From the NCBI RefSeq assembly GCF_000143415.4, contig NW_003314268.1, positions 2,186,494-2,250,493 of the forward strand: a stretch of 64,000 bases of DNA. The letters run 5' to 3'. This document shows positions 1-51,980 of this stretch, piece by piece. Positions within the stretch are counted from its first letter, which is position 1. Every line of letters starts with the position of its first letter. Below the pieces are notes generated by a model that saw nothing but the letters and a program-made list of their open reading frames with translations, was not told the DNA's origin and made no database searches. Made by a program: the position numbers and the translations under genes. Source of the stretch: Selaginella moellendorffii. Its lineage: Eukaryota; Plantae; Lycopodiophyta.

Positions 1-3000
1 TTGCCAAGTCCTCTCACTCGACAAGTTTATGATCATACATGGACTCCTCCATGCTTGGCTCCATAGGCCACCCCTTTTGAAGTTAGCACCTTCAACTAGG
101 GGATTTATTCCCCTGACTTGCCACTCTCGTTTAGTAAATCTTCCGACCAATGTAACATGGTTTCATGCATAAGCGTGAAAGTCCTTTGACCAATGACTTT
201 TGTTCAAGTCATCCCTTTAAACACTCGGGAACTACTTCTCCAACCTTGATAGCATTGCCTTATGGCAAGCTTCAAGACCACACTTCTGCTATGCCACTCT
301 GATTTCGCACGTTTTATGAACCATTTACACTTGGCTTTCTAGGTACTATGCTACCTAGAATTGTCTTTGGGAACCTTGAAGGAACTCTGTCCCTTAACTT
401 GTTAAGGCCTCTCCTTTCACAAGCTTTCTAATGGTCATACAGTCTAGCATGGATAATTCCATGCTTTAGACTCTTCATGGCAATACAGTTGCTAGTAAGA
501 ACATGCTCAAGCGCCCACTTGATTCTTCACTCCCAACTGACATAATCACCCTTGGTTATGCTCTTCCATTCTTATGGTTTGGTTCTATCCCCTTACTACT
601 TGCTTTTGGCCTCATATATTTCCTTTGGTTATTCACCTTTAAACTAGGAGGATAGCTTTGCACTTTCTACCATGCCTTAGCAAGTATTCTTGGGGATGAA
701 CCTACCTAATAGCCTAGGGAGTGGTTCCTCAATCTGGGTATGCTCACCTTATAATCCCACACACTAGGATTAACGTTGTTACATATGGGCCTTTATATGC
801 CCATCACTAGCCTTGCTAAAATTCCATTTTTGGCTTTGTCCAATTTAGAGTAGACGAACTTCTCCAGTCTTTGCAACTTTTTGTCCATCATTCGCTAGGA
901 ACTTAGTCCCTTGGGCCTTATTTATTGCCTTCACGACATCAAACACCACCTCCTGGTGTTCTAGAGTGTTTGGGTGTCCCAATAATAACCTCCTTGATAA
1001 TGAGTATTCCCTTTTACAACATTAATTTATTATATTGGCACATAAGCAATTTATTGCCCCATAAGGGTATATTTAACTTCCTTATGCCATTAAGAAGCCT
1101 TGGGTAGTTACCTGCTACCAGTTTAACCAATTATTTTGCACCTTTTGCTTAGTTGCTTCATAGTTGTCAAGTCCTACAACTCATTGCTAATGCGTCCACA
1201 CCTCCATCATTATCTGGGTCACCACAGTCCAATTGCATGCCTTCCAACTTAGGCTATGCCATTCCCATTTCTATTAGGATTCCTTTGGGAAGGGGTTTTC
1301 GTGAACCTGCCAACTCACCTTAAAGCATCACACCTTGGCACATTTGGTGTCTCCACAACATCAGCTCCACAAGCCTACCTTTATGACACTTCTTACTTGT
1401 GTTTAGATCCTTGTCAAGACCAATACAGTTCTTTCTCATGCCAACGATCCATTAGCACTGCACCATAGAGTTTACTCACAACTTTGTGTCAAAGTTGTTT
1501 TCTTCTGGGAATACCTTCCCCCAAACTTTAGTATGGCACATTCCACCATTGATGAGATACTCACTATTCTCATACTTAGATCCTATGATCCTCCCCAACT
1601 TTCATGGGGCACAACACCCCTCAGTCCAAATGCTTTTAGCAATCCCTTAGGACCATTCTTTGACTCTACTTGAGTCATCTAGCATTTTTGGACTTTCAAA
1701 TCCAATGACCCATAAGTTCCTATTCGAGGTGTTAGCTCACTAGAATACAACTTCTTGTATTCATGTCCTACTCACAAGGACCATCTTTGCAAGTGTCACT
1801 CCAACACTTAATGTTGTTCCTTAGGGGCAGCCTTTGCCCCCTTTGGACTACTTGTTCATGTGCTGCGAATACCAACTCATCCTGTAAGTACACCCCCAAC
1901 TCTTTGGGTTGTTCCAGCATTTATCAAGAGTAGCCTCGACTACCATTTCAAAGACTTGTGTCCTCTTCTGTATTTGACCTTCCATGGTCATTAATTCTTG
2001 TCTCAAATTCATGAGCACTAACCTCAACCATATGAGGATAATCTTGTGACTCCTTTATTGTTTTGGAGTTTTTATCTTTCCCGTGATCTTAACTATAGTT
2101 GTTTATCACAACTACATTAGCTAGTTTGCTGAGTCAAACGTTCATCTGGATCACATCCTCAACTCTTTGAGGAAAACCTTATACTGTTCCCAAAATCCCG
2201 AAGTCGTTCCATTATTGGCCCTTTTTCATCCACCACCTCACCTACCAGTTCACACATGAACTGTAGTGGAGAGCCATGTCTTCCTGACCTGCTACTCCTC
2301 ACGGATAGGCCCACTCCTAAGACCTTCTGATGCCAACACCAGTGGTGATATACTTGAGCACCAATAAAAGTCAGACTAAGGAATAGCTTTGATACCAAAT
2401 TGTAAGCGACTAAATTTTCCATTCTACTTTAGTCACTTAACCACACGTCCAACCACTTGGAAGAGTCTTATTCACAACCTCCTTAATATAAAGAACCGAC
2501 TCCCCGAGATGCCGTGGGTTAAAGGATCCCCAAAAGCATGACCAAAATGACAAAGAGTTCATCGGATGGGACCAAGTCAAAGATCGAGTCCAAGACCGAC
2601 TTTGAGATAGAGTCTGGGATCGAGTCCGAGGCTGAATAGGAGACCGAGTTCAAGACAGAATCCGAGATCCAAATCGGGTCCGAGATCGAGTCCGAGGTCG
2701 AGTCCGAAGTCGAGTCCGAGATCAGGTCCGAGATCAAGTCTGAGACCGAGTCCGAAGTCGGGTCCGAGATCGAGTCCGAGATCGAATCTGAGACTAAATC
2801 CAAATACTAATACGGGTCAAGGGGTGAAAGCCCAAAGCGTGCATCTCCCAGAGGGGGGGGTGCAGGGGGTTCCAAAAGTATAGTAGGGATAGTGAGGTCC
2901 AGGAACTAGTCTTGAAGGAACTCTCCAGTGGTGCTTCCAAACTGACTTGAGGTTGAGATTGGGGCCGAGGGGCCTTGAGTGGGAATGAGCATGGGCTTGG

Positions 3001-3367
3001 GTGGTGTGGGAGGGGCCACCCAGGGAAGTGCTCAAGAGCAGCTCCCACTCCCGATAGGGAAACCGACTGTGGTGCTCCCGGCTCATGTGGAGTGGTGCCC
3101 CACTTGAGTACCTTGTGGCTCATTAGTCCTCGCCGTTCCTAGGGGCTTGGGCCTTCCCTTCGGGATGGAAGTGGGGGGGTAGAGATACCCATATTGGGCT
3201 GTTAGGCCACGGTGTTTTGCCCCGATGTCCCGAAGTAAGTGTTGCACCCAAGGCTTGGGATTTAGAGGGTCCCATGATCAAATCTTGTTGTACCAAGGGG
3301 TGTTAGGAACCTGGAGGCTTGGTGTGCTTGGCTGCTTGTGCTTGCGGGGAGTGTAGCCGAACCTTAA

Positions 3368-5083
3368 TGTGAGACACAAAATCCCTAGGCCCCAAAGTGG
3401 AGCTAGAAGGGTGCCACGTGGTAGTGGCCAAAGCGAGAGCCAAACGAGCGTAACACGTTTGGACCAAAAGCTCCGACTTGAAAAGTCAAGAGCGGGAGTG
3501 GAACTCCCAACAAAGTGCTCGAGGAATGAGCACGAAGCGAGCAAAAGGCGAGGCTCCAAAAAGGGACCCAAAAGGACCAACACATGACACGTGGGAGTGT
3601 CCGAGATGGACTCGAGTTGGAGTCCGAAGTGGAGTCCGAGATGGACCCAAGTTGGAGTCCGAAATGGAGTCCGAGATGGACCCGAGATGGAGTCCGAGAT
3701 GGAGTCCGAAGTGGAGTCCGAGGTGGACCCGAGATGGACCCGAGTTGGAGTCCGAAGTGGAGTCCGAGATGGAGTCCGAGATGGAGTCCGAGGTGGACCC
3801 GAGATGGACCCAAGTTGGAGTCCGAAGTGGAGTCCGAGATGGACCCGAGATGGAGTCCGAGATGGAGTCCGAGGTGGACCCGAGATGGACCCGAAATAGA
3901 GTCCGAGATGGAGTCCGAGATGGAGTCCGAGATGGAGTCCGAGACCGGGACCGAGACCGGGACCGAGACCGAGACCGGGACCGAGATCGGGACCGAGACC
4001 GAGGCCGAGACTGAGCCCGAGCCCCAGTCCGAGTCCGAATCCGAGTCCGAGTCTGAGTCCGAGTCCGAGTCCGAGTCCGGAGCCTGAGAGGGTGAAAGCC
4101 CAAAGCGTTTGTCTCCCAGACCCTGGGGGGTTTGGTGAGCTCCAAAAGTATAGTAGGGGGAGGACTGCAGTGGAGCCAGTTTGGCCAGGAAAGGCCAGTT
4201 TGGCCCAGGAAGGCCAGACCCAGTGTTGGGTGATGAACTGACCACTGGGAAGTCCAAGACTAGAGTGAATACGGACCGACAAGCGGGGTAGCTTGGTGAA
4301 GTGTTCAAGAGCCGGCTCTAGTTCCCCCGGGAGATCGACTGGCCGATGCTCCCAGTCCAAGTGTGGGTGGCACTACCTACTTGGATACCAGGCGTGGCTC
4401 AACGGAACCTCGCTCTAAGCCCATGGCTAGAGCACCTAAAGACGATAGGTGGGGAGAGTACCCAGGTGGCTCGCATAAAGCCACGGTGTTCCGAAGTGTT
4501 GTCCCAAAGGCCCAGACTGTGGAAAGGAAGAGGAGCAGTCCTCTGGGGTAGTGACCAAGGACACAGTCATGTGGTGAGGAAGTCCCAGAGGACCGTGGGA
4601 CTTAGGGGTCGGGCCTGTGGGCCTCGATCCAGTGGCAGTGTTGGTAAACACGGCCAGGGGCAGAAAGGGACTTGGTAGGAACTGACAAAGGGACTTTGGG
4701 GAAGGCGACTCCTCAGGTCTGTGGGCATCCTAAGGATGCTAAGGAGTGGATCTAGGATGACCACTCATGAACAGATGGCCCAGTCTTGGAGAGACGGGAT
4801 GGTGATGCAAGTGGTATTGGACCACTAGTGCAGCAAAGGTGAATGGGCATGGCCTTAGCGTAACGGGCCGAGATGTCAGTGGTACCTTTGGGTGTCGGTC
4901 TTCGGACCGGACACGTGGAGCACTTGGACCAGGTGCAAGTGTTGAGTGGCATGGATGCCATTCTTGGGGCTAGCAAGTCCCAAGTCATGAATTGGACTAA
5001 TGGAGGTTGTGAATGAGACTCCTCCAAATGGTCGGAGGTGTGGTTAAGTGACTAAAGTAGAATGGAAAATTTAGTCGCTTACA
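3368..5083 (+). repeat. 5' LTR of A2 (1716 bp)
   Basis: TGTGAGAC...GCTTACA; differs from the 3' LTR by about 6 substitutions plus 59 bp of repeat units (by eye). Confidence 0.95.
3596..4080. repeat. U3 minisatellite: 12/11-bp units (ATGGAGTCCGAG / ATGGACCCGAG) followed by 6-bp units (GAGACC/GGGACC/GAGTCC)
   Basis: Directly visible. Homologous arrays at about 9365-9907, 12040-12505 (minus) and 18890-19100 (minus); a related GAGATCGAGTCC array at about 2580-2795. Confidence 0.95.
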
Positions 5084-5086
5084 ATT

Positions 5087-5098
5087 TGGTATCGGAGC
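5087..5098 (+). other. Primer binding site (initiator tRNA-Met type)
   Basis: TGGTATCGGAGC 3 nt after the LTR end; the canonical plant PBS is TGGTATCAGAGC. Confidence 0.9.
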
Positions 5099-8000
5099 TG
5101 TTCCTTAGTCCGACTTTTATTGGTGCTCAAGTATATCACCACTAGTGTTGGCATCGGAAGGTCCGAGGAGTGGGCCTGTCCTTGAGGAGTAGCAAGTCGG
5201 GAAGACATGGCTCTCCATTACAGTTCATGTGTGAACTTGTAGACGAGGTGGTGAATAGAAAAGGGCCAATAATGGAACGACTTTGGGATCTTGGGAACAG
5301 TGCAAGGTTTTCCTCATTGAGTTGAGGATGTGATCCGGATGAGCATTTGTCTCAGCAAATTGGCTAAGGTTGTTGTGGTAAACAACTAAAGTTGGGATCA
5401 CGGGAAAGATAAAGACTCCAAAGCAATAAAGGAGTCACAAGATTTTCCTCATATAGTTGAGGTTGGTGCTCATGAAGGTGAGACTAGAAGTAATGACCGT
5501 GGGAGGTCAAATACGGAAGAGGACTCAAGTCCTTGAAAAGGTAGCCGGGGCTACCTCTAATAAATGCTGGAACAACCCCAGGAGTTGGGGGTGTATTAAG
5601 TGGATGAGTTGGTGTTCTCATCACATGGACAAGTAGTCCTAAGGGGCAAAGGTTGCCCCCAGAGAACAAAATCAAGTGTCGGAGTAACACTTGTGAAAAT
5701 AGTCCTTTTGAGTAGGACAGGAATGCAAGAAGTGTATTCCAGTGAGCTAGTGCCTCACAAGTAGGACCTTATGGGTCTGTGGATTAACCAAGTCCAAAAC
5801 TGCTGGATGACTCAAGTAGAGTCAACGGATGGTCCTAAAAGGACGGATGGAAGCATTTGGACTGAGGTGTGTTGTACCCCACAAAGGATAGGGGGGGATC
5901 ATAGGATCCAAGGATGAGAACAGAGGGTATCTCATCAATGGCAGAATGTGCCATGCTAAAGTTATGGGAAAGGTGTTCCCAGAAGAAAACAACTTTGACA
6001 TAAAGTTGTGTGTGACCTCTATGGTGCAGTGCTAACGGATGGTTGGCATAAGAAAGAGCGGTGTTGGTCTTGGCAAAGACTTAGACACGAAGGGGAAATG
6101 TCATAGAGGTAGGCTCGTGGAGCCGATGGTGTGGAGACACCAAATGTGCCAAGGTGTGATACCTTGAGGCTATGTTGGTGGGTTCATGAGAACCCCTTGC
6201 CAAAGGAATCCCAATGGAAATGGGGATAGCATAGCCTAAGTTGCAGAGCATGCAGTTGGAGTGTGGTGACCCAGATAATGATGGAGGTGTGAAAGCACCA
6301 AGCAATGAGTTGTAGGACTTGACAACTATGAGGCAACTAAGCAAGAGGTGCAAAATAACTGGTTAAACGGGTAGAAGGTAGCTACCCAAGACTTCTTAAT
6401 AGCATAAGGAAGTTGGATATACCCTTACGGGGGATAAGTTGCTTGTGTTGCGATATAGTAAGTCAATGTCATAAAAGGAAATACTCATTGTCAAGAAAGC
6501 CATCATTGGGACACCCGGACACTCTAGAACACCAGAAGGTGGTGTTTGATGTCGCGAGGGCAATGGATAAAGCCCAAGGGACTAAGTCCCTAGCGAATGA
6601 TGGATAGAAGGTGCTATCCAAATGTCCAAAGTTGCGGAGACAGGAGAGGACTGTCTACCCGAGTTGGACAAAGCCAAAAATGGAATTTTGGCAAGGCTAG
6701 TGATGGGCATGTAAAGGCCCACAAGCAACAATGTAATCCCAGTGTGTGGGATTATAAGGTGAGCATACCCGGATTGAGGAACCACTCCCTGGGCTATTGG
6801 GTAGGTTCATCCCTAAGAATACTTGCTAAGGCATGATAGAAATTGCAAAGCTATCCTCCTGGTCTGGAGGAGAATGACCGAAGGAAAGGTGTGAAGCCAA
6901 AGGCAAGTAGTATTGGGATGGAACTGAACCATAGAAATCAAAGGGCATATCCAACAGTGGTTATGGATGTTGGGAGTGGAGAATCAAGAGGGTGCTCGAG
7001 GATGTTGTTGCTAGCAACCGTGATGCCATGGAGAGTCTAAAATATGGAATTGTCCATGTTAGACTATATGGCAACTATAAAGCTTGCGAAAGGGGAGGCC
7101 TTAGCAAGCTGAGGGACAGAGTTCCTTCAAGGTTCCCAAAGACGATTCTAGGTAGCGTAGTACCTAGAAAGGCTAAGTGTAAATGGTTCATGGAACGCGC
7201 GAAATCAGAGTGGCGCAGCAGAAGCGTGGTCTTGAAGCTTGCCATGAGGCAAGGTTATCAAGGTTAGGGAAGTAGTTCCCGAGTGTTCAAAGAGAGGGCT
7301 TTGAACGAAAGTCGATGGTCAAGGACTTTCATGCTTATGCAGGAACCATGTTACAATGGTCGGAGGACTTGCCAAGTGAGATTGGCACGTCGGGGGAACA
7401 AAGACCCTAGTTGAAGGTGATAACTTCAAAAAGGGTGGGCCATGGGGCCGAGCATGGAGGAGTCCATGCATGATCACAGACATGTCAAGTGAGAGGACTT
7501 GGCAGTGTGGAGGAACCAGGTTCCTAAGCTGTGATCTGTAGCGCGCTTTAAAAAATAGGTTGGTGCACCGGCGTGGGGAGTCACGCTAGGCATCTAGTGT
7601 GATGCCGTCCGTAGATGCATATACGGAGGTTGGGTTCGAGTCCCGACCCTCTAGTGCTTGGGTTCGAGTCCCAAATCACTAGGGCGTGGTGATGGTTTGG
7701 AATATGAGGACACTCATATTTCGGTGGTCATGGACTCTCAGTGGGGAGACTGGTTTGGGCACACCGCCAAGCGAGGGATGCCTCGGAGTCGTGATGCACG
7801 GTTAGATTGCTTAGTGTGAAAGCTCAGCATATCTAACTTGAACACTTTGGTGCAAGTGGCACCAAGGTCGTGGTGAGTGAGATGGGGACACCTAATCTCA
7901 GTTACTATGAACCCTTGGCCGTAAGGGCTAGCTTGGGTGCACCGCCAAGTGTGGGGGATGCCCCCGGGGTTATAGTCAACAACTTGGAGGTCTAGAAAAC

Positions 8001-9122
8001 CAAGTACCTCTTGGCAACTCTGTTAAGGTGCCAAGGTGAGATCACTAGGTGATCTTATGGCCAGATAAGGACAAGGTCCTTGGTTGGCTAAGGAATGAAG
8101 TTCCTGGTTCAAAATGTTGAAATTGAACTGTTTAAGGTGGTGTGGCTTGGTCGTGATAACCAAGTGGGAAGAGCACCTAAGGGAAATAAACTATGTCCGT
8201 GTGATGGCATAGTGAGTCCGAGGAAAGTAGTCTCTATAAAAGACCCATGGGAGGGTCACGAAGTTGGGCCGTGGATAGAGCCCATAGCAGAAGATGCTAA
8301 AGAGACGTACTAGAGGTGAACATCCTTCGGACTTGGCAAAGAAAAGTCTTTGCTATGGAACCGAAACAATACCTCAAGGAGGGAGGTAGAGATTCGATGT
8401 TGCTTAGTGCAACAATCAACGGATAGGAGCAGAAGATGAGTGGCCAAGATAGGGCCACGGAATCCCTTGGAAGGAATCCAAGTGACAAAGTTAGGCGAGG
8501 AACACTAATGTGTTGGACGCTAACAAGTTGCGGGGAAGGAAGTGTGTTTCCAAGGAGGGATTCCGAAATGCTCCGAGTTGGCGAAAGTGGAAGCTCCAAG
8601 GGAGGGAGCGGTAAGGTAGCCAAATGATAGGGCCATGAACAGCCCTAGCACAAAGCATGATAACTGGAACTTTGGCACGAAATAGAAGAGAGGATGATGG
8701 TGCCCTCGAGTAGAGAACTTCCTAGGATGGGAAGTGGAGTTGCACAAAAGGTGCAAGGCAAGGTGTCGGAGACACCTAGGAAATTGACTCCAAGAAGTCA
8801 AAAATTCAAAGTTCCAAAGTGCAAAGGTTATATCGATGGAAATTGAGACTACTCGAGAAGGAGTAGTGGGATTGACTTAGAGAAGGGTCTCTAAGAGGTT
8901 TAGCGAGAACTAAACCAATAAAAGGATGAACCATTACATGTGGTCCAATCAGTCTCTAAATTGGAGAGACTACGCTCCTTAAAGGATGGATAAGGCATGG
9001 TGAGCCTTTGATGTCAAACCATAGACAAAGATTGGCTAGGTGCCAAGAATGGAAATGGTAACACGTGTGGGTGTTACTTTATGAAAGGGTTTACCGTTCG
9101 ATGAGGACATCGAACTTCGTCT

Positions 9123-9136
9123 ATGGGTGGTGGAGT
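9123..9136 (+). other. Polypurine tract
   Basis: ATGGGTGGTGGAGT immediately before the 3' LTR. Confidence 0.75.
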
Positions 9137-10911
9137 TGTGAGACACAAAATCCCTAGGCCCCAAAGTGGAGCTAGAAGGGTGCCACGTGGTAGTGGCCAA
9201 AGCGAGAGCCAAACGAGCGTAACACGTTTGGACCAAAAGCTCCGACTTGAAAAGTCAAGAGCGGGAGTGGAACTCCCAACGAAGTGCTCGAGGAATGAGC
9301 ACGAAGCGAGCAAAAGGCGAGGCTCCAAAAAGGGACCCAAAAGGACCAACACATGACACGTGGGAGTGTCCGAGATGGACTCGAGTTGGAGTCCGAAGTG
9401 GAGTCCGAGATGGACCCAAGTTGGAGTCCGAAATGGAGTCCGAGATGGACCCGAGATGGAGTCCGAGATGGAGTCCGAAGTGGAGTCCGAGGTGGACCCG
9501 AGATGGACCCGAGTTGGAGTCCGAAGTGGAGTCCGAGATGGAGTCCGAGATGGAGTCCGAGGTGGACCCGAGATGGACCCAAGTTGGAGTCCGAAGTGGA
9601 GTCCGAGATGGACCCGAGATGGAGTCCGAGATGGAGTCCGAGGTGGACCCGAGATGGACCCGAAATAGAGTCCGAGATGGAGTCCGAGATGGACCCGAGA
9701 TGGAGTCCGAGATGGAGTCCGAGATGGAGTCCGAGATGGAGTCCGAGATGGAGTCCGAGACCGGGACCGAGACCGGGACCGAGACCGAGACCGGGACCGA
9801 GATCGGGACCGAGACCGAGGCCGAGACTGAGCCCGAGCCCGAGTCCGAGTCCGAATCCGAGTCCGAGTCTGAGTCCGAGTCCGAGTCCGAGTCCGAGTCC
9901 GAGTCCGGAGCCTGAGAGGGTGAAAGCCCAAAGCGTTCGTCTCCCAGACCCTGGGGGGTTTGGTGAGCTCCAAAAGTATAGTAGGGGGAGGACTGCAGTG
10001 GAGCCAGTTTGGCCAGGAAAGGCCAGTTTGGCCCAGGAAGGCCAGACCCAGTGTTGGGTGATGAACTGACCACTGGGAAGTCCAAGACTAGAGTGAATAC
10101 GGACCGACAAGCGGGGTAGCTTGGTGAAGTGTTCAAGAGCCGGCTCTAGTTCCCCCGGGAGATCGACTGGCCGATGCTCCCAGTCCAAGTGTGGGTGGCA
10201 CTACCTACTTGGATACCAGGCGTGGCTCAACGGAACCTCGCTCTAAGCCCATGGCTAGAGCACCTAAAGACGATAGGTGGGGAGAGTACCCAGGTGGCTC
10301 GCGTAAAGCCACGGTGTTCCGAAGTGTTGTCCCAAAGGCCCAGACTGTGGAAAGGAAGAGGAGCAGTCCTCTGGGGTAGTGACCAAGGACACAGTCATGT
10401 GGTGAGGAAGTCCCAGAGGACCGTGGGACTTAGGGGTCGGGCCTGTGGGCCTCGATCCAGTGGCAGTGTTGGTAAACACGGCCAGGGGCAGAAAGGGACT
10501 TGGTAGGAACTGACAAAGGGACTTTGGGGAAGGCGACTCCTCAGGTCTGTGGGCATCCTAAGGATGCTAAGGAGTGGATCTAGGATGACCACTCGTGAAC
10601 AGATGGCCCAGTCTTGGAGAGACGGGATGGTGATGCAAGTGGTATTGGACCACTAGTGCAGCAAAGGTGAATGGGCATGGCCTTAGCGTAACGGGCCGAG
10701 ATGTCAGTGGTACCTTTGGGTGTCGGTCTTCGGACCGGACACGTGGAGCACTTGGACCAGGTGCAAGTGTTGAGTGGCATGGATGCCATTCTTGGGGCTA
10801 GCAAGTCCCAAGTCCTGAATTGGACTAATGGAGGTTGTGAATGAGACTCCTCCAAATGGTCGGAGGTGTGGTTAAGTGACTAAAGTAGAATGGAAAATTT
10901 AGTCGCTTACA
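9137..10911 (+). repeat. 3' LTR of A2 (1775 bp)
   Basis: Direct repeat of 3368-5083, preceded by the PPT and followed by the TSD. Confidence 0.95.
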
Positions 10912-12688
10912 CTTAAGTCCAGTCTAATCTGGGGAGGGGGATTGGGAGAGATTTGGGAATCCGTGGATGGAAGGCTAACGCTCTGTTGCTCATGCAGTGA
11001 GTAGCTAAAACTAAGTAGGACCAAGGAGGAGCTGGTACAATAGGCGGGAACCTTGGTGAGGGAACTTAGCACAAGCCAAGGCAGTGTTGGTCAGATAGAC
11101 GAGGTAAGCTGGCAAATTGGAAAGGAAAAATTTGTGGCTTACACTTAAGTCTAATTCAAGACTTGGGACTTGCTAGCCCCAAGAATGGCATCTATGCCAC
11201 TCATCCCTTGCACTTGGTCCAAGTGCTCCACGTGTCCGGTCCCAAGACCAACACCCAAAGGTACCATTGACATATCGGCCCATTATGCTAAGGCCATACC
11301 CATTCACCTTTGCCGCACTAGTGATCCAATACCACTTGCATCACAATCCCGTCTCTCCAAGACTGGGCCATCCGTACACGAGTGGTCATCCCAGATCCAC
11401 TCCTTAGCATCCTTAGGATGCCCACAGACATAGGGAATAACCTTCCCCAAAATCCCTTTGTCAGTTCCTACCAAGTCCCTTTTCCATCCATGGCCATGTT
11501 TGCCAACACTACCACTAGATCAAAGCCTGCAGGCCCGGCCACTGAGTTCCATTGTCCTCTGGGACTTCCTCATCATGTGACTGTATCCTTAGTCACTACA
11601 CTAGAGGGTTGCTCCTCCTCCTTTCCCCCATTTGGGACTTTGGGACAACATTTCGGAACACCGTGGCCCTACGCGAGCCCCGTGGGTACTCTCCCCACCT
11701 TCCACCCTTAGGTGCTCTAGCTATGGGCTTAGAGCGAGGTTCCGTTAAGCCACACAAGGTATCCAAGTAGGTAGTGCCACCCACACTTGGACTAGGAGCA
11801 TCGGCCATTCAATCTCCCGGGGGAGCTAGAGCCGGCTCTTGAACACTTCACCAAGCTACTCTGCTTGACAGTCCGTATTCACTCTAGCCTTGAACCTCCC
11901 AATGGTTATCCTGTCACCCAACACCTGGGTACAACCTTCCTGGGCCAAACTGGCTCCACTAGAGTCCTCCCCCTACTATACTTTTGGAGCTCACCAAACC
12001 CCCCAAGGTCTGGGAGACAAACGCTTTGGGCTTTCACCCTCAGACTCAAACTCGAACTCGGACTCAGACTTGGACTCGGACTTGGCCTCGGACTCGGCCT
12101 CGGTCTCGGTCTCGGTCCCGGTCTCGGTCTCGTCTTGGTCCCTGTCCCGGTCCCAGTCCCGGTCTCGGTCTCGGTCTCGGTCTTGACTTCAGACTCCGTC
12201 TTGGGTCCTTCTCAGACTCCATCTTGGATTCCATCTCGGGTCCATCTCAAACTCCATCTTGGGTCCATCTCGGACTCCATCTCAAACTCCATCTTGGTCC
12301 ATCTCAGACTCTATCTCGGGTCCATCTCGGACTCCATCTTGGGTCCATCTCGGACTCCATCTTGGACTCCATCTCGGGTCCACCTCGGACTCCATTTTGG
12401 GTCCATCTCAGGTCCATCTCGGACTTCATCTCGGACTCCATCTCGGGTCCATCTCGAGCTCCATCTCGAACTCCATCTCGAGTCCATCTCGGTCCATCTC
12501 GGACTCTTTTATTGCCCAATTCATGCTCGTTCCTTGAGCACTCCGATGGGAGCTCCACTCCCGCTTTTAACCTTTCATGTCGGAGCCTTTTAGTCCAAAC
12601 GTGTTACGCTCGCTTGGCTTTCGCTTTGGCCACTACCACGTGGCATCCTTTCGGCTCCACTTTGCGGCTTAGGGATTTGTGTCTCACA

Positions 12689-15525
12689 CTTGCCTTCACA
12701 AGACACAAACACTAAACTCATGTCCTCAAGTTATATACTTGTTCAACATGAACGTAACATCCCAAGTACGAGATATAGGTTCATGGACAAGTATGATCTA
12801 AATGACTACTTGAATCCAACTTAGCCGCAATAAGCTCACCAACATGTTTAGCCATTAGCTCTTAGCATGCCTTGAAGAGGCTAACTTGCATGATCAATAC
12901 TTAGTCAAAACTAAAGTGAAGACCATGAGATAGACTCATATTGGTACACAACCTCCTCATAGACAAAGCTATAGCACGAGTACCAACATCTCAATTACAA
13001 ATAATTAAGTTGAACATCATTATCCTCAGCCAAGGTGCAAGGCTACCAAGACCAAGTTAAGATCAGTGAGAGCTCACTACTCTCATAGAGTTTTAGCGAA
13101 ATGCAAGGTGCAATCTGCCACTAAGTAGAACGCTATAAAAGAAAGGCACAAGGGTCACCTTTCTTAGAAAAAGTGCAATGGCCATTTTTCTACACCAACT
13201 CCAGACTCTATCCAACTCAATTGCCTTAACCCCAAAAGTTAACATCCTTTTTGGGTTGCATCATACAAATTACCTACTAAGGTCTAAGCTAACCGAAGTT
13301 AACTCCAACCCTTTCACTAGTTTGTACTAGTTTATGAAAACATAATGGTTTTCGAGCAAAGTGATCAAGAGATCAGCCATTGGAAAAGTCTAAGAAATTT
13401 TGTGGAAAATTTTCCATCCTAGAGAAAGAATGACTCTCAGTCTAAGAATACAAATTCTTAATACTCAACCAACTTCCACAACTTCATATAAATTCACCTC
13501 AACACAAATTCTCATGACTTAATAGCATGCTTAAACATCAAATATCATGCCCATATTACCGACATCCAACATCAACATCCGCAAAATGCAAAGTGAACAT
13601 CCAAGGCTTAATCACAAAGACCACATCTTTGGATATCCACATTGCACTAACACTTTTTTTCAACCACTTTTAAGATCCATTGTGAAGCCAAAACATTAAC
13701 AAGAAAAATGATATGGAAAATCAAGTTCTAGGGAAAAATTCCTCATCACTCAAAATGATAATGCCACTTCCACTAACATAAATGCTAATGATAGCAATAC
13801 CTCAACTACACACTTTCTCCATCTAATAATCTACTCTAAGTGCTAACAGATCAATTGACAAGCCATAGCAAGTGAATGCTATAACCTTTTCCAACACCTC
13901 AATAGGCAAACTCAAGGACATAAGATACCAACTTAAGCTTAGTATATCATAAATCACTATTGCGAATTTAGTCAAAACTACTACAATGCTACTACGTGCA
14001 AGTAGACTAGCTTCACTATCAACCACTTTAGGGTTGATCATTGTTTAACCAAGCAACTTCGTAAACACATTGCTTATTATCATATAAATATGATATAAGT
14101 ATCACAATGACTTGATCATCAATTGAGCAACACCACGAGTAATGCCCATGTCACTACTACAAAGGTTTATATGAGTATCAAGTGTCAACTCGACTCAACA
14201 AAATGCAACATAAATGCCACACCCTATCGATAGAGATTTATAACACTTAACACCACTAACTTTTGTTCACCTCTACCCAAGGAACTAATGTGAAGTCTTA
14301 GCACCCAAACATATACTCACTCGGATCATCGTTTTCATCTCTACATATGCAATGAGACTAGTTGCCCAATTTCATTGGATAGTACTCACCGTGACGTATC
14401 TTCTAATACCAAATGTAGCGCACATGGTTTTGACACTTTATCCTATGGTGATTTACCATAGGATAACACCACGAAGCAAAACCTAAACCCTCTTTATGCC
14501 ATGTGACACATGCCACGTGTCCAAGGACAGTGGTGCGGAACCCGAGTTTCAAGGCCTTGGGCAAGGTACGGAGCCAAACTCCTAAGCATAGAGCCAAGGA
14601 GTGGTGGAACGGAACCACGAAGCAACTCTCGAGCATACAACCCAAGGAGCGAAGGGATAGGAGCATAGAGTGACTTGGAACAGTCCTAGAGCAACCAGTA
14701 TCCCAATGCTAGGACTAGCACGCAAAACGGAGCTAAACAGAGTTTAGCATTATTTCGGCATACCGGTGGCCTAACGCAAGTATATGGGTACTCCACCAGC
14801 TAGCATGGTGTGGAACTTGGGCTTAGACCCAAGCCGAACGCAAAACAAAGACATGCAAGCGGGAGCTAGATTATACCTCAGGTTGGTCGGCCATGCCTGA
14901 CCTATACACTATCTATACTATACATTTGGAACCCCCTATAGCCCCCTCCCTTGAGGAACATATGCTTTGGGCTTTCACCCCAAGCCTCCCTTACTACCAG
15001 AAGTTAATCTCTGGGACAAGCTTGAAACACCCTCACTATCATGTCCCTAGATTGTGGATTTGGACACGAGATGAACACCATTGTGTTCAAGACAATCTCT
15101 ACATTCCTTAAATATGCCAAATGAGCAAATCTGGACATTTTTTATAAATAGCATTTAAGACCGAATGGTATTAACACAAAAGGCATGATAGTGAGGGTGT
15201 TTGGTAAACACGGTAAGCTATCATCTAGAGAATATTAAGGGACCAATCTCAATATCCCAGGGGTTCTTGATACTAACAAGTGCAAGCTAATGACATAAGT
15301 TTCTCAAACTAGGCTGAGTATGCTCAGCAAGAAACACATATGGTTCCTACCTTATGTTTATCCAATCTAAGTCCATGTTCATTAACAAGTTTCTCAACTA
15401 GCTCAAGTGGGAACTAATAACGGGTCTAGCAATACCGATCTTCTGCCGTCGTGGCAATAAGGAAAGAGTGTCCGTAAGGACTAGTCAATAAGTAACTTTT
15501 GATACCTGAAGTCATATTCGCTACA
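12689..15525 (-). mobile_element. 5' part of a second LTR retroelement family (B): 5' LTR 14414-15525, PBS and non-coding internal remnant
   Basis: LTR bounded by inverted termini TGTAGCG...CGCTACA. PBS-like TGGTATTAGA on the minus strand at 14402-14411. Shared LTR motif at about 14912-14982. Family-A sequence resumes at 15526. Confidence 0.75.
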
Positions 15526-18500
15526 CACCTTTTTTGAAGTCAACACCTTCAATTAGGGTTTTTATTCCCCCCGACTTACCAATCTCGTTTAACATGTCAC
15601 CTGACTAATGTAACATGGTTTCATGCGTAAGCGTGAAAGTCCTTAACCATCGACTTTTGTTCAAAACCATCTCTTTAAACACTCAAGGACTACTTCCCCA
15701 CTTTGATAGCCTTGCTTCATGGCAAATTTCAAGACTATGCTTTTGTTGCACCATTTTGATTTCGCACATTTTATGAACCAATTACATTTGTCTTTCTAGG
15801 TATTAAACTCCCTAGAATTATCTTTGGGAACCTCGAAGGGACTTTGTCCCTTAGCTTGCTAATGCTTCTCCTTTTGTAAGCTATGTAATTATCATATGGT
15901 TTAATATGGATAATTTCATACTTTAAACTCTCCATAGCATTATAATTGGTAATAGCAATATGTTCGAGCACCCATTTGATTTTCCACTCTTAACTTGCAT
16001 AACCACATTTGGTTATACCCTTTGATTCCTATGATTTGGTTTTATCCCTTTACTACTTTGCTTTTTTGCCTTTTGTGTTCCCTTAGTTATTCTCCCCCCA
16101 ACTAAGAGGTTAGTTTTGCACTCTCTACCATGCTTTAGCAAGTATTTTTAAGGATAAACCTACTCAACAACTTAGAGAGTGGTTCTTCAATCTGGATATA
16201 CTTATCGTGTAATCCCACATACCGAGATTAATATCATTACGCATGGGCCTCTTTATACTTATTGCTAGCCATGCTAAAATCCCTTTTTAGCTTTGTCCAA
16301 TTCGGATAGATAAACTTCTCCCATCTTTGCAACTTTGGATATTGGATAACATATTTTATCCATTATTCAATAAAAATTTAGTCCCTTGGGCCTTATCTAA
16401 TGCCTTTATGATACCAAACACCACTTCTTGGTGTTTTAGAGTGTTTATGTATCCCAATAATGACCTTCTTTAACAATAAACATTTCCTTTTATGACATTA
16501 ACTTATTATATCTCAATTTAAGCAATTAGTCTCTTGTAGGGTATATTTAAACTCCTTAGCACAATAAGAAGTCTTGGGTAATTAACTTTTACCCATCCAA
16601 TCAATTATTTTGCACCTTTTGCTTAGTTGCCTCATAGTTATTAAATCTTATAACTTATTGTTGGTGTTTCCACAACTCCCTCATTATTTAAGTCACCACA
16701 CTATAATTGTATGCTTTCTAACTTAAGCTATGGTATTCCCATTTTCATTGGGATTCCTTTGGCAATTTATAAACCCACTAACTTGATCTTAAGGCATCAC
16801 ACTTTAACACATTTGGTGTCTTCACACCATCAGCTCTATGAGCTTACTCTTATGACACTTTCCACTTGTGTTTAAGTCTTTGTTAAAACTAAAGTAGTTA
16901 TTTCTCATACTAACTATTAGTTAGCACTACACTATGGTGTTCACACACAACTCTGTGCAAAAGTTGCTTTCTTCCGGAAACACCTTTCTCACGACTTTAT
17001 ATGGCACATTCCGCCATCAATGAGATACACTCTATTCTCACACTTGGATCTTATGATCCTCCCCATCTTTCATAGGATACAACACACCTCAATCCAAATG
17101 CTTCTACCAATCCTCTAGGACCATTCCTTGATTCCACTTGAGTTATCCAGCTTTTTGGACTTTGTTAATTCGATGACCCATAAGGTCCTACCTCTTGGCT
17201 ATTTTGAGGTGCCAGTTCACTAGAATACATTTTTTTGTATCCATGTCCTACTCCCAAGAACCATCTTTGCAAGTGTTACTCTGACACTTGATCATTTTCT
17301 GTTTCCTATGAGCTACCTTTGCCCCTTAGGACTATCCATCCATATGATGAGAATACCAACTCATCCTCTCAGTATACCCCAAACTTTTTAGATTTGTTCC
17401 AGCATTTATAAAAGGTAACCCCGGTTACCATTTCAAGGACTCATATCCTCATCTGTATTTAACCTCCTATGATCATTAATTCTGGTATCAAATTCATGAG
17501 CACAAATCTCAATTATATGAAGATAATCTTATGACTCCTTTATTATTTTGGAATCTCTTTCCCGTGATCCCAATTATAGTTTTTTACCACAATTACATTA
17601 TCCAATTTACTAAGTTCAATGCTCATTTGGGTCACATCCTTAACTCTCTAAGGAAAACCTTATACTATTCCCAAGATCCCAAAGTCATTCATTTATTGGC
17701 CCTTTTTTATCCACCACATTGCTTACAAGTTCATACATAAATTGTAGTGGATAGCCATGTCCTCCTGACTTGCTACTCCTCAAGGATAGGCCCACTCCTA
17801 GAACTTTCCGATGCCAACACAAGTGATGATATACTTAACCACCAATAAAAGTCAGACTAATGAACAGCTTCAATACCAAATTGTAAGCGACTAAATATTT
17901 TAATCACTTAACCACACCTCTAACCACTTGAAGGAGTCTTCACTCATAACCCTTATAAGTCCTACTCCAGATTTAGGGGCTTTCTAGCCCTGGCATCCCG
18001 ACGCCGGCCGCCGCACCTGAATGGCATCTATGCCACTTAGTCTTTGCACTTAGTTCAAGTGCTCCACATATCCGATCCTATGATTGACACCCAAAGGTAC
18101 CATTAACATATTGGCCTGTTATTCTAAGGCCATGCTCATTCACCCTTATCACATTAGTAGTCCAAAACTATCACAGTCTTGTTTTTCAAAGACTGTGTCA
18201 TCTGTCCATGAGTGGTCATCCCTTGACCACACTTTAGCACCCTTAGGATGCCCATAGACATGAGGAACCCCCTTCCCCAATGTCCTTTTTTCCATCCCCA
18301 CCAAGTCCCTCTTCATCCATGGCTATGCTCACCAACATTGCTACTAGGTCAAGGCCCAAAGGCTTGACCACTAAGTCCCACTGTTCTTGGGACTTCTTCA
18401 TTCTGTAATCATATCCTTGGTCACTACACTAGAGGATTGCTCCTCTTCCTTTCCACAGTTTGGGGCTTTGGGATGACATTTCAAAACACCAGGGCCCTAT

Positions 18501-19100
18501 GCTAGCCTTGTGGGACTCTCCCTACCTTTTGCCTTTAGGTGCTTTAGCCATATGGCTAGAGCAAGGTTTTGATGAGCCACGCTAGGTATCCAAATAGGTA
18601 GTGCCACCCACACTTGGATTGGGAGCATCGACCATTTGATCTCTAGAGGGAGCTAGAGTTAGCTCTTGAACACTTCACCAAGCTACCCCATTTATTTGTT
18701 TATATTCACTCTAGCCTTGGGCTCTTTAGTGGTTATATCATCACCTACTATATAGGTATAGCTTTTCTTGGTTACACTGGCCTTTTCTAGCTAAATTGGC
18801 TTCACTAAACTCCTCCCCCTACTATATTTTTGGAGTTCACCAAACCCCTTAGGGTCTGGGAGATGAACGCTTTGGGCTTTCACCTTCGGACTGAGACTCG
18901 GACTCGGACTTAAACTCGGACTCAGACTCAGACTCAAACTTGGACTCGGACTCAGACTCAGGCTCAGATTTGGGCTCAGTCTTAGTCTCAATGTTAGTCT
19001 CGGCCTCAGCCTCGGTCTAGGTCTTGGTCTCAGTCTCGGTCTTGGCCTTGACATCGGACTCCATCTCGGGTCCTTGGACTCTATCTCGAGTCCATCTTGA
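15526..19100 (-). mobile_element. Oldest, most decayed family A copy (A3): internal region, PBS and truncated 5' LTR
   Basis: Collinear with 66-2480 and 11150-12300. Degenerate PBS at 17867-17878; LTR from 17882, broken off inside the minisatellite; many C>T and G>A changes. Confidence 0.88.
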
Positions 19101-22100
19101 GTGACATTGTTCTACATGTAGATGTTGGATATGAGGAGCTGGTGCTCATAGGATTGAGGGTGTATTGGACTTTTGTTTTATAGTGCAACAGACTTAGAGT
19201 TCAACTTTAAATTTAAATATGCTACATTCCTTATCACTAACCCTTGTTGCATTTTTTCCCCACCATTTCAATTCTCTTCACACTTGCCTTTTCTCTATGA
19301 TTTTTCACTGTTATAAGTGATTTCTTTGCACTACCATAAACTTCCTCACTACTTTTTTACTTCCCCTCTTAGAAAAAGAAAAAAGTGTTTATTAAATTGA
19401 TAAGTCTAAGTTATATAATGGGGTTCTAAACCAACATGTATTTCTTTCACACTAGTTATCTTATTTCCCACATTTTTCTTTTCCCTCTATTAATATATTG
19501 ATGTAAATCTTAAATTTCTAAACCTCTCCTCAATTAAAACTCCAACCCATACCTGTATTATTGCACAATACCATATGTTAGCAACTTCTTATAAGCTCCT
19601 AAATTTAAAATTCCCAAAAGGTTCTAATATTATTCAAACCCAAAGACGTTTAACCCCAAATATCCTATAATGATTGGGGTGCACTATTATTTATGGGCCC
19701 TTTCCTTTTATATTTGAACCTTTATAAATTGTCTCTTAAATTGTTCCCTTTGGTTGTTTATTCTTGTTTTTAGATTTATTACTTATGAAGAGTCCTTACT
19801 TATTGCCCTCCTTCCTATATTCTTCCCTAATTTTCCCTACTATTGTTATTGCTCATTTTTTTAATTCTAATCATGTCTTTCCATAGTTTACCCACACTTC
19901 CACCTTTCTAGATTCTACTTAATTTGCAGTAGCTAATCTAAGATTATCAATTAAGCATCATATAAGTGTTGTATCATTATTTCCCATATTTTTCTCCTTT
20001 GGCTATGTATTTCCATTTTTCACTATTAATTCATCCCTAAAGAATTGCATCTTCATTATTGATGTTAATGGTTTTTTTTCATTTAAACATTTCAATCTCA
20101 ATCTGAATTTTCTATTGCCTACACTATTTACCTTCTCAATTTTAGTAGCCCTAGCCCCCCCAATCTTGCATACTCTTAACAATTTCTCCTGTTTAAAACT
20201 ATGATCTTTTTGCCCCAAGCCCAAATATTTTTCTTGAAATTTTAGGATGAATCAAGAGAAGGAATTATTGACATGTGGTGTTCTATTATAAGGTGGGCAA
20301 AAATATTAAAAACTAAAAGTATGACAAAGCTTTAAATGATGAGACACCAAGATATTTAAGATTTATATCAATATAATTTACATCATTGATAAAGGAAAAA
20401 ATAAATGTTGGAAAAGGTACAACTAGTGGGGAAGAGACACACACTCTAGAACCCCACTATATAACCTTGACTTTTTTATTTGATGAGTACTTTTTTTTTT
20501 CTCAAAACGGAATACAATAAAGTAGTGAAAAAGAATGTGTTAGTATAAAAAAATCATTCACAAAGATAAGAAATCAAACAAGGGCAATAAAAATAAAAGT
20601 GGTAGTGGAGAAAAAAGCAATAAAGTTTGTGGCTAAGAAATAATGATTCAGAGGGAAAAAAAGACAACAATTGAGGGTAAGATTTGCATAGATCAAAGCA
20701 AAACCAAACACATAAATTTGAGGTATATGGAAAAAGGTCAAATTCTATATTTATCTTTTCTAAAATCTAAAATAAATATATTTATACCAAAGTCAATAGC
20801 AATGATGAGTATTATAGAAGAACGAGTCATAGAGTTCATTTGACTAAACTCATTTTAAGGAAGTGTAAGTGGGAGATATTTCATTGGTGAATATGGAAAA
20901 TCAAGATTAAACAAAATTTAGAGAGGATGAAAGATTTCAAAAATTATTTAGCAAGTTTTGGGTAAAAGATTTGGTTAACTCTCCAACAAAAGGCAAATCA
21001 AAGATTGCAATAAAGGATAAAAGAAATGAATAATCTGAAAAAGAAGTGTGTAGATAGTATGGAAGTCTTCAGTCGAAAATAAAAGGAGGGTCAAACAAAA
21101 TTATTCTTTACAAAGGGGTCTTTAATGTTTTAAAATTTTTTAGGAAGAAAATGAGAGAAGAAATGAGCTAGATGGTAGAAGAGGAGTAAAAGGATTGATA
21201 AGAAAGAAAATAATGTTATAAATTGATAGAGAAAAATGTATGGCCAAACAAAAATAAAAAAAGACATACTAAAAAGTTGATGATTAAAGTTATAGTGGTC
21301 CGAGTTTATGAAAAACCAATTAGGTATAATGGGATAAAATTATTTATGGTTGATAAGAGCAAAAAATAGTGGCTAGACAAGATAAAGAGTAAAAATAAAG
21401 CCTTTTTATCAAAGTTAATCCTAGAAGAACAAGTCTAGAAATAAAAATATCATTAATAGGGAAACAAGGGTTAAAGACAATGTACCCAATTGTGATGTTT
21501 AAATATTCCAAAGTATCTATGTGTCAAGATGCACTAATAGTCCCATTTAGCTTATATGGGTCAAGATTGAAAAAATACTACCACTTAAAAAGCTGATAAA
21601 GATGCCATATTTGCCAACAAATGATATTCTTGAAGTGGATCTAGAAGAATTTATAAAAGAACTCAATAAGTTCCAAGCTAAGAGAGTAAAAGAAACAATT
21701 TATATAATCATTAAAAAGGTTGTACCAATAGGCTTTAGACTTCATATGTGTGGCATTAGCATATCATGACATGATAGTGATAGTGACATTAAAGGATATT
21801 AAATATTTGAGGGAGAAATATTATAATATTATGATCAAGGATGAAAGGGCATGGTATAAACTCTGTAGAGTGGATGCTTATGTATAGCTCAAGTTTTAAA
21901 TGTTCTTCCACACATTCTAAATAACTTTATGCCATAAAAAATTTAAAATGTTATTGAGTTACACAGGGTTGATGTGGCATTAGTGAAAGACAAGATCTTA
22001 GTGGCAATCTAAAAGTTATTTACAATACTCATTTGAATGGAAAAAATGCTAATTATAATAAAAGTTGATATATACCACTCACAAACCATATGTCTAAGTG

Positions 22101-22960: not shown

Positions 22961-22988
22961 GGTTTAGGGTTTAGGGTTTAGGGTTTAG
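22961..22988 (+). repeat. Interstitial telomere-type repeat (TTTAGGG)3+
   Basis: GG TTTAGGG TTTAGGG TTTAGGG TTTAG. Confidence 0.85.
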
Positions 22989-23155
22989 ATCTAGCTTTTG
23001 CATTGTCTAGATCTAGTTTTTCCCATTTCCTTTCTTTTGTTCTTTCCTTTCAGGATTTTGGTTTAGATCTAGCTTTTTGTATTGTCTAGATCTACCATTT
23101 CCTTCTAGCTTTTTGTCATTTCTCTTCTTTTGCTCTTTCTTTTTCATTCGTCTCC

Positions 23156-26100: not shown

Positions 26101-27732
26101 TAGATGAGGATTTTGTGCCATCGGCGGTTACTATACTTGACGTTTAGTGTCCACAAGGTGCAGAGCAAGATCTACCTTCGCTTGATGAAATTTGTGAGAC
26201 TCAAAAGATTGAGCCATGGATTCGAAGGCTTCGAGATGGGTTTGAGAATCCTGCATCACTTGCTGATGACTTGCCTTTCCAGCATTTACATTCTCAATAT
26301 CATCTTAAAGATGGCCTTCTTTATTTTGTGGGGACAGATCCTGATGATCATTTACAACTGGTGGTGCCTTCTATCTTTATTCCGCGGTTTCTCCATGCCT
26401 ACCATGATTCTCCTGTTCTAGGTGGGCATATGGGACATCGTCGTGTAATCGAGAAGCTACGCAAGTTTTTCTATTGGCCGGATATGCGATGTGATATTAT
26501 CCGGTATGTGCGTAGTTGCGTTTGGTGCCAAGCTCGTAATACTCCCCCTCGGGCTCCAGAAGGACGGTTGGAGTCAATTGCAGTTTCCCGTCTGTTTGAG
26601 TTGGTGGCGTTTGATCTTATGGGACCTTTTCCACAGTCGACTGTTGGCAATGAGTATGTTATTATTGCTTCTGACTACTTAACTCGTTGGGTGGAAGTTG
26701 GTGCTCTTGCTAGCGCATCTACAATTGCTATTGGATACTTCCTCCTCAATCGAGTGGTGTTCCAGCATTCTTGTCTAGAGCGGATTCTTTCGGATAATGG
26801 TCCCGCATTTATGGCTGAGGCATTTCATGTTTTGACGTCTCGGTTGGGGATTTGCCACACTTTCACGAGTGCTTATCATCCACAATCAGACGGTCTGGTG
26901 GAACGGCTCTTTCAGACGTTCAAAGGGATGATCGCGAAGTATGTGAACTTTCAGCATTCGGATTGGGATAGTTATTTGCCATCTCTTCGGTATGTATATG
27001 TCACTAGGGTGCAGAGTTTTGTTGGTGTTTCACCATATAAACTCCTATATGGTCATGATCCAATATTACTAACGGAGCTGGATTTACCTTCGCAATTGCC
27101 ACGAGCTGCGGATGCTAGGTCATGGGATCAATATTCTTCCACTTGTCCGAGCGGAGTCTGCCGAACACTTAGGCCGCGTATAAGTGGGACAACAATGGCG
27201 TTACAACTCCCATCATCGTCCACCTGCAAAGTACAAAGTGGATGATTTGGTGTTAGTTCGTTTTCCCCATCTTATGGTACGTGGTTTATCTAAAGGGCTC
27301 CTTGCATAGTGGAAAGGACCGTATCGAGTGTTACGGCAAGTTGGACCACAAGTTTATGAGGTTTAGCATGACGTCTAGCAGGCTGATCCTCCAGAGATTG
27401 TGCATGTGCAGCAGTTGAAACGCTTCATACAAAGGGATCAGGAGCGGTTAATACCATCTACAAATCCGCCGATGCCTCCTCCTGATGTTCCTCCAGATCC
27501 CGGCCCATCTACAAGAGAACCTTGAGTGTCTTCCATTATTCCGAGAGGAGGGGATGATGTGAGGGCCAAGTGTATGGCTACGATGCCGTATATTAATATT
27601 AGTGTAGTGGGATTTTAGTAGCCGTCAGATTGGTTTCAATCCGGACCACTCGCTCCTGTATATAAGCTAGGGTTTTTGGGCTAATGGATACACACATTTC
27701 TGTATTCCCTTTCCATATTCCATGCACTCACA
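23156..27732 (+). mobile_element. Decayed Ty3/gypsy LTR retrotransposon (gag-PR-RT-RNaseH-INT, 3' LTR present, 5' LTR missing)
   Basis: gag from ATG 23156 with CCHC knuckle CWACDEVGHTYRRC; protease LVDTGS and LILGMDWL; RT motifs CIDYRPLN, LDLASGYWQ, MPFGL, FIDD; RNase H DA(F)DIGLGGVL; integrase HHCC, DDE and WKGPY motif; several in-frame stops; PPT GAGAGGAGGGGA at 27543-27554. Confidence 0.95.
27558..27732 (+). repeat. Short 3' LTR (175 bp) of the gypsy element
   Basis: Follows the PPT; inverted termini TGTGAG...CTCACA; contains TATATAA. Confidence 0.75.
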
Positions 27733-28746: not shown

Positions 28747-28792
<46 letters not shown>

Positions 28793-28797
28793 ATATA

Positions 28798-28830
<33 letters not shown>

Positions 28831-51931: not shown

Positions 51932-51947
51932 GCAGGACTAGCTCAGA

Positions 51948-51980
<33 letters not shown>

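Follow-up and report, generated by a model that had tools for sequence, protein, structure and literature searches.

How long terminal repeat (LTR) retrotransposons that encode no protein, such as large retrotransposon derivatives (LARDs) and miniature retrotransposons with terminal repeats (TRIMs), compete for the proteins of a helper element is an open question, and the usual answer, that they keep a primer-binding site (PBS), a polypurine tract (PPT) and a packaging signal, is backed by little structural detail. For LARDs such as barley Sukkula, a passage in one account (PMC7215508, citing Kalendar et al. 2004) says that the interior specifies a conserved RNA secondary structure; in that description LARDs carry LTRs, a PBS and a PPT around a multi-kilobase non-coding interior, occur in several conserved copies and are presumed to be mobilised in trans, all of which likens them to the element analysed here. 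We analysed 64,000 nucleotides of the lycophyte Selaginella moellendorffii (contig NW_003314268.1, positions 2,186,494 to 2,250,493 of the forward strand; this whole stretch is called the window) and found within it a young element, A, at positions 3368-10911. Element A is a presumably helper-dependent, LARD-type LTR retrotransposon without protein coding, and short hairpins occur along its whole genomic RNA at several times the density expected by chance.

By its structure element A is a LARD: it has TG...CA LTRs, a 5-bp target-site duplication, a PBS, an imperfect PPT-like tract and a 4,053-nt interior without coding, and it is one of three copies in the window whose interiors are 79-86% identical. 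The likeness drawn here is one of description, and the described LARDs come from grass hosts whereas element A comes from a lycophyte. LARD LTRs are about 4.5 kb long, against 1.7 kb in element A, and as far as we know no LARD has been described in which purine-looped hairpins of 5-9 bp follow one another regularly over the full length of the RNA. Rice Dasheng, a large non-coding LTR element, is amplified by the related autonomous family RIRE2, which is the mode we presume for element A, and we know of no report of a hairpin architecture in Dasheng. To our knowledge, then, what is new here is the lycophyte host together with the quantified architecture: regular, spanning the whole RNA, at about 25 hairpins per kb and with purine loops.

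Other described groups fit less well. TRIMs such as Cassandra and Helenus, the latter reported from S. moellendorffii (PMC7215508, PMC10886601), resemble element A in being non-autonomous and in having LTRs, a PBS, a PPT and 5-bp duplications, but they stay below about 1 kb, and their LTRs contain 5S or tRNA sequences that resemble pol III promoters, whereas element A is 7.5 kb long and has 1.7-kb LTRs without an Rfam or ARAGORN match. TRIM, Cassandra and Helenus were therefore rejected by size and by the lack of such a match, and a retrozyme was rejected because the Rfam scan found no hammerhead ribozyme in the LTRs, as retrozyme membership would require. Among packaging signals, the psi stem-loops of human immunodeficiency virus type 1 (HIV-1), the purine loop of mouse mammary tumour virus (MMTV) and the 5' domain of Ty1 are, like the hairpins of element A, short stem-loops that present unpaired purines (PMC8096270, PMC5454406). 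The packaging and dimerisation signals of retroviruses and Ty take up 100-400 nt within the 5' leader, whereas element A has about 100 motifs of this type spread along more than 5 kb.

A hairpin was scored wherever a perfect inverted repeat enclosed a loop of 3-13 nt, and the expectation was taken from 200 dinucleotide shuffles. Between positions 4160 and 9136 there are 144 hairpins with stems of at least 5 bp, against 40.0 ± 6.6 in the shuffles; with stems of at least 6 bp there are 75 (10.0 ± 2.9 shuffled, z 22), with at least 7 bp 27 (2.6 shuffled) and with at least 8 bp 8 (0.5 shuffled). The interior alone (5084-9136) holds 63 hairpins with stems of at least 6 bp where 7.7 ± 2.9 are expected, and across these comparisons the excess in hairpin count corresponds to z-scores of 16-22. 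After overlaps were removed, 99 interior hairpins were left (24.4 per kb against 6.6 per kb shuffled), of which 37, 37, 18, 6 and 1 have stems of 5, 6, 7, 8 and 9 bp; their loops are mainly 4-7 nt long and their median start-to-start spacing is 31 nt. Two control regions lie at chance for stems of at least 6 bp: a coding gypsy element at 23156-27557 (7 hairpins against 9.3 shuffled) and positions 40000-44053 (8 against 9.4).

Folding gave a matching picture. The mean z-score of the minimum free energy (MFE) in 120-nt windows of the interior was -2.33 on the sense strand, where 59% of windows fell below -2, and -2.69 on the antisense strand; for the R-U5 part of the LTR it was -1.88. A 401-nt segment (7140-7540) folded with a z-score of -6.99, and 0 of 100 shuffles folded equally well. 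When the scan was extended to the whole window, z-scores ran from -1 to -4 over the first 19 kb, where the copies of the family lie, and stayed near 0 in 1-kb bins from 20 to 64 kb.

An earlier reading of the window from its letters alone (the original prediction) had proposed that a chain of short hairpins with purine-rich linkers fills a non-coding LTR element from just after a TATA-like box, at 4160-9136. Every hairpin that it listed lies where it was placed, the chain is far above chance while the gypsy element and the rest of the window are not, and the folding z-scores, set against shuffles and the coding gypsy, are strongly negative in the element and at chance elsewhere. The same holds for its view of a recently inserted, non-coding LARD-type element, given an LTR divergence of 0.35%, a CTTAA duplication and no coding relic. 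Two details changed. Because the LTR runs to 5083, positions 4160-5083 are the R-U5 of the 5' LTR and not interior; and the chain is present downstream of the TATA-like box but does not begin there, as hairpins are also in excess in the U3. Hairpin density is 21.6 per kb in the non-repeat U3 (3368-3598) and 20.6 per kb in R-U5, and because this U3 sequence shares the excess, the whole genomic RNA, beyond the interior, has the hairpin property.

The pairing is local and the unpaired sequence is skewed in composition. Inverted k-mers at most 13 nt apart occur at 5-12 times chance, against 1.2-1.3 times for those more than 50 nt apart. On the sense strand the loops are 70% purine (A.33, C.08, G.37, T.22) and the linkers 62% (A.32, C.15, G.31, T.22), in agreement with the purine-rich linkers noted before. 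Neither Tandem Repeats Finder nor a periodicity check detected a tandem unit or periodicity in the interior, so a hidden repeating unit behind the hairpins was rejected and the stems are, as predicted, not a tandem repeat. Multiple internal polypurine tracts were rejected as well, there being 20 tracts of at least 9 purines where 21.8 are expected. Since the fold z-scores are equal on both strands, the evidence for strand specificity comes from base composition. The same strand symmetry, expected of perfect Watson-Crick stems, would suit palindromes that act in DNA, be it while the cDNA is single-stranded in the course of reverse transcription or in chromatin, where they would bind proteins or form cruciforms. 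We consider this very improbable: the roughly 100 palindromes differ from one another and have no common motif, the purine-pyrimidine asymmetry of loops and linkers indicates a single-stranded sense molecule, and we know of no DNA-level palindrome mechanism of this kind for LTR elements.

That the element has no coding remnant, as the original prediction held, was borne out on both strands. The sense frames of the interior contain 68-81 stop codons each in 1350 codons, and the longest stop-free stretch on the sense strand is 110 aa. A Pfam search at E ≤ 1 with the 20 longest stop-free interior pieces (10 per strand, down to 54 aa) gave no match for 19 of them and, for one antisense piece, two sub-threshold matches at chance level, none of them credible. 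A tblastn search of the element with open reading frames (ORFs) of at least 100 aa from the 20-64 kb part of the window, which include the reverse transcriptase and integrase of the gypsy element, gave no match better than E 0.1. A decayed gag-pol that has lost its coding signal was on these grounds rejected as the origin of the interior and has, in our estimate, almost no chance of being correct: stops fall in every sense frame, neither Pfam nor the gypsy ORFs of the window gave a credible match, and LTRs that are 99.65% identical mark a young copy. Known RNA families and tRNAs were likewise rejected as a source, as the only match of the Rfam scan at E ≤ 1 was a sub-threshold one to SCARNA18, in R, and ARAGORN found no tRNA in the element.

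The hairpin excess is a family trait that decays with copy age. Besides element A, the window contains an older copy, BD, broken in two by nested insertions, and an oldest copy, C, so that of the three copies claimed by the original prediction one is a full element, and the rest resolve into two partial older copies and a putative solo LTR (E) that belongs to a related family. Interior identity, taken over 2.35 kb, is 86% between A and B (the copy BD), 79% between A and C and 80% between B and C. Hairpin density falls from 24.4 per kb in A to 16.3 in BD and 13.1 in C, with 6.6-9.1 per kb in shuffles, and with stems of at least 6 bp there are 23 hairpins in the first part of BD (2..2485) against 5.6 expected and 20 in copy C against 6.7. 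In the two segments folded with RNAalifold, the same hairpins were predicted at the same alignment columns in all three copies.

We found a real but thin signal of purifying selection on the stems in the lineage while it was still transposing. Differences were polarised by the majority state on a three-copy star tree, with stems defined on the internal node, and because almost no time has elapsed since the insertion of element A, the young-copy branch records evolution during active transposition. On this branch 18 of 566 interior stem sites changed against 142 of 1755 other sites (p=2e-5), a contrast that is in part an artefact, as parallel decay in the old copies mis-assigns the node and drops sites from the stem class; in the GC-to-AT subset, which is free of the artefact, 1 of 268 stem sites changed against 29 of 732 others (p=0.0013). 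R-U5 behaved similarly on the young-copy branch (3 of 160 stem sites against 41 of 639 others, p=0.02), with no difference on the older branches. On the young-copy branch the rate of change at stems was thus lower by a factor of 2.5-3 than elsewhere, whereas stems changed like the rest of the interior on the B branch (6.0% against 6.3%) and the C branch (12.5% against 13.1%). This thin signal, drawn from small counts, fits hairpins that mattered for transposition and then decayed neutrally, and the hairpin trait of the family is probably under constraint. A further test, in which changes on the young branch appeared to stabilise and those on older branches to destabilise the folds (ddG, the change in folding free energy), was withdrawn, since the spectrum of AT>GC against GC>AT mutations explains the contrast.

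The alignment of positions 5040-7440 showed in its own right that differences private to the young copy are mostly G (68) or C (25) where both old copies have A or T, and that 35 of these 93 sites lie in a CG or CNG context. This pattern suggests that methyl-cytosines of both old copies decayed in parallel at shared positions, an effect that throws off polarisation with three taxa.

The account that we favour, tentatively and at somewhat less than even confidence, is that the RNA architecture is selected and that its main role is recruitment of Gag and nucleocapsid (NC) and packaging. The genomic RNA (R-U5, interior and U3-R) would carry short, independent stem-loops in series, about 25 in each kb, insulated by purine-rich, C-poor loops and linkers that would be unable to pair with one another. 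Such an architecture would act in cis, as a property by which the sense RNA exploits the proteins of a helper element, offering many short helices flanked by exposed G and A, the type of site that retroviral Gag and nucleocapsid prefer. In MMTV, single-stranded purines beside helices are determinants of Gag binding and packaging (PMC8096270), and in the packaging region of Ty1, Gag recognises short stem-loops (PMC5454406). The loops of element A, at 70% purine and 8% C, have the stem-loop and unpaired-purine character of such retroviral-type signals. Helper Gag and NC would then bind, package and chaperone the parasite RNA in competition with the RNA of the helper, and higher RNA stability may come as a side benefit. 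A more specific form, in which roughly 100 insulated stem-loops of 5-9 bp would act as beads on a string, a multivalent Gag/NC decoy without any duplex of Dicer length, is possible but doubtful.

Several observations weigh against selection for packaging. Known packaging signals are local, confined to the 5' leader, and not genome-long; no helper was found in the 64-kb window, where no other element shares the LTR/PBS region; and fold z-scores are alike on the sense and antisense strands in all copies. Watson-Crick pairs are restored by double substitutions in 3 cases between A and B and in 13 between A and C, against 5.0 and 13.9 expected from independent substitution at non-stem rates with stems as defined in A, a comparison to which three copies lend almost no covariation power. 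Nearly all of these doubles are GC to AT, as methyl-cytosine decay would yield. Interior transitions that keep a sense-strand G:U pair outnumber those that break one (57:31 for A-C, 29:20 for A-B), a ratio that holds at internal stem positions, but the interior bias gives p=0.08 after polarising, and in R-U5 it is reversed (10:19 for A-C). The stem-selection test is itself based on three copies and small counts. The original prediction that the RNA is selected for local structure has therefore fared unevenly: stems changed less on the young branch and hairpin positions are kept in all three copies, but double changes reach only the neutral level, and of the covariation signals it looked to, compensatory doubles sit at the neutral expectation and the G:U bias is found in the interior but not in R-U5, with three copies to draw on.

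Some of these points would equally be expected if the hairpins were a functionless by-product, either of small inverted duplications that arose when reverse transcriptase snapped back or switched templates and that built up in an unconstrained interior, or of the capture of a sequence that was hairpin-rich by chance and has not yet decayed in the young copy. Compensatory changes are not in excess, the fold signal is the same on both strands, hairpins are lost at a neutral rate in dead copies, and the ddG contrast between branches is gone once the mutation spectrum is controlled for; against this, the young-copy branch is 8% diverged at non-stem sites and only 3% at stems, and inspection of the alignment found no indel-born hairpin among copies up to 21% apart, which places the hairpins before the split. 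Loop C depletion is moreover confined to one strand, which strand-blind duplication would not predict. On balance we think a by-product origin unlikely.

The length of the helices bears on a different role for the same selected architecture, namely protection of an untranslated 5-6 kb RNA through nuclease resistance, poor small-RNA-guided cleavage and the lack of any helix of Dicer length. To this role we assign a limited likelihood. The hairpins span the whole RNA including U3, unlike a signal restricted to the leader, the RNA has no ORF that would load ribosomes, and the stems are 5-9 bp long, with 12 bp the longest perfect inverted repeat in the element RNA. Shuffled sequences have maxima of 10-16 bp, however, so there is no sign that longer helices were avoided; a deliberate limit on helix length was rejected, and the proposal of the original prediction that every helix stays below the length Dicer needs agrees with the data but is not demonstrated by them. 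The presumed silencing pressure is also weakened, because S. moellendorffii has no prominent class of 24-nt small interfering RNAs (siRNAs) and no phased or secondary siRNAs (PMC5569507). Packaging stays our preferred, if tentative, reading of the architecture.

The anatomy of element A and its relatives is given in Table 1. Aligned over 1716 bases, the two LTRs show 6 substitutions, and because this amounts to only 0.35% the insertion is young. Two indels, one of 47 nt and one of 12 nt, further distinguish them in the 12-nt tandem array of U3; as these lie within the LTRs of a single element, the length of the U3 array changes faster than point mutations build up. The counterpart arrays of the 3' LTR are at 9368-9907, and repeat copy number is unequal between the two LTRs. 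The antisense strand of the array contains a spurious 360-aa low-complexity ORF, for which HMMER searches of all libraries gave low-complexity matches only (residues 50-240, best E 1.5e-10). The PBS, TGGTATCGGAGC, is presumably one mismatch away from the usual PBS of plants, which is complementary to initiator methionine tRNA (tRNA-iMet). At 7630-7689 the interior contains two copies of a 28-nt unit that includes GGTTCGAGTCCC and resembles the T-arm of a tRNA, although ARAGORN called no tRNA there; it could be a fragment of a short interspersed nuclear element (SINE) or a Helenus-like fragment, or be due to chance.

Table 1. Positions of element A, its target site and related copies in the 64,000-nt window
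Feature	Position	Strand	Basis and remarks
LTR element A, complete	3368-10911	+	Window self-comparison; total 7.5 kb
Target-site duplication CTTAA, left copy	3363..3367	.	Read directly
Target-site duplication CTTAA, right copy	10912..10916	.	Read directly
5' LTR	3368..5083	+	Self-BLAST against 9137-10911; 1716 bp, TG...CA termini
U3 tandem arrays	3599..4079	+	Tandem Repeats Finder; ~30 copies of the 12-mer GTCCGAGATGGA, then ~30 copies of the 6-mer GAGACC
TATA-like box	4149..4156	+	Sequence; predicted function; RNA start of the original prediction lies just 3' of the box
Primer-binding site TGGTATCGGAGC	5086..5097	+	First base is the third past the 5' LTR; kept in both older copies (3/3 copies)
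Non-coding interior	5084..9136	+	4,053 nt; 99 non-overlapping perfect hairpins
G-rich polypurine-like tract	9125..9135	+	Sequence; imperfect (2 T in 11 nt); ends 2 nt ahead of the 3' LTR
3' LTR	9137..10911	+	Self-BLAST and LTR alignment; 1775 bp
Putative solo LTR E, related family	2486..3362 and 10917-11143	+	~1.1 kb
Older copy BD, part 1	2..2485	-	Last 86 bp of the 5' LTR, PBS and 2.4 kb of interior, running off the window start
Older copy BD, part 2	11148..12688	-	Remainder of the 5' LTR; nested insertions separate it from part 1
Oldest copy C	15526..19097	-	Partial 5' LTR, PBS and 2.4 kb of interior

The copies are nested, element A inside E and E inside BD, and the break in each part of BD corresponds to position 4998 of A. 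The LTR of E is 65-72% similar to the young LTR in the repeat and TATA region and shares its ...GCTTACA end. The 9-mer CCTTAAGTC, in one and the same orientation, is where element A entered E and where E entered BD; both insertions are flanked by a CTTAA duplication (3363-3367/10912-10916 and 2481-2485/11144-11148), and the two sites occupy non-homologous positions in the LTRs. This repeated use of CCTTAAGTC hints at sequence-specific integration by the integrase of the helper, with two cases to go by. Between BD and C, positions 12689-15525 hold 14.5 hairpins per kb against 8.0 per kb shuffled, are T-rich on the minus strand and lack similarity with the 3' half of the interior of A; they may represent another hairpin-rich interior or some element without relation to the family. 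Outside the window, two scans of metagenome DNA with conserved patterns of 23 and 26 nt gave 0 matches, and three gene-dense S. moellendorffii loci with cytochrome P450 genes (65 kb) contained no copy of the element. A word-indexed protein search with one interior ORF likewise gave no match, and exact look-up found none of 7 ATG-initiated ORFs of the element in the protein collection.

The window belongs to S. moellendorffii scaffold GL377572.1, and its minus-strand ORF of 455 aa at 37228-38592 is identical to a protein deposited at NCBI. Window positions 48.5-28.2 kb have a collinear counterpart of 96-98% identity in the second haplotype, GL377601.1, and the allelic sequence (L004) ends in a gypsy LTR, short of element A. 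Its positions 20483-21368 are 89% identical to the gypsy LTR region at 22967-23853 of the window and inverted relative to the collinear surroundings, and because of this the haplotypes differ in transposon content here. Short palindromes are also frequent at 28001-29000 (65 per kb against 15 shuffled), where the sequence is TA-rich simple sequence of 19% GC; they are a composition effect unrelated to the hairpin element. About 2.5 kb of the P450 region at 49416-52010 recur with 96% identity at a second locus of the same scaffold (L001 9159-11734, GL377572.1, 2.30 Mb), and the P450 of the window is 95-96% identical to its paralogue there; as the flanks of this near-identical region are unrelated, it represents a recent local gene duplication. 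At 53108-56810, on the minus strand, lies a resistance-type gene with NB-ARC and leucine-rich repeat (LRR) domains and a C-terminal DUF4283, in two overlapping ORFs (a frameshift or an intron), whose best named relatives, from Marchantia, Sphagnum and Calypogeia, are just 40-44% identical.

Element A is an unusually clean case in which to ask how protein-less LTR elements obtain helper proteins: it is young, it sits in a small sequenced genome, its computed structure signal is very strong and covers the whole RNA, and its hairpins are simple units that can be mutated. Should the hairpins turn out to be a mutational by-product instead, they would be a striking footprint of reverse-transcriptase errors. 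If the string of hairpins does win packaging or stability for the RNA, the hairpin-density statistic could be applied to non-autonomous elements across other genomes; and if it acts as a multivalent decoy, it would represent a design principle for parasitic retroelement RNAs, for LARDs and for other non-autonomous elements generally.

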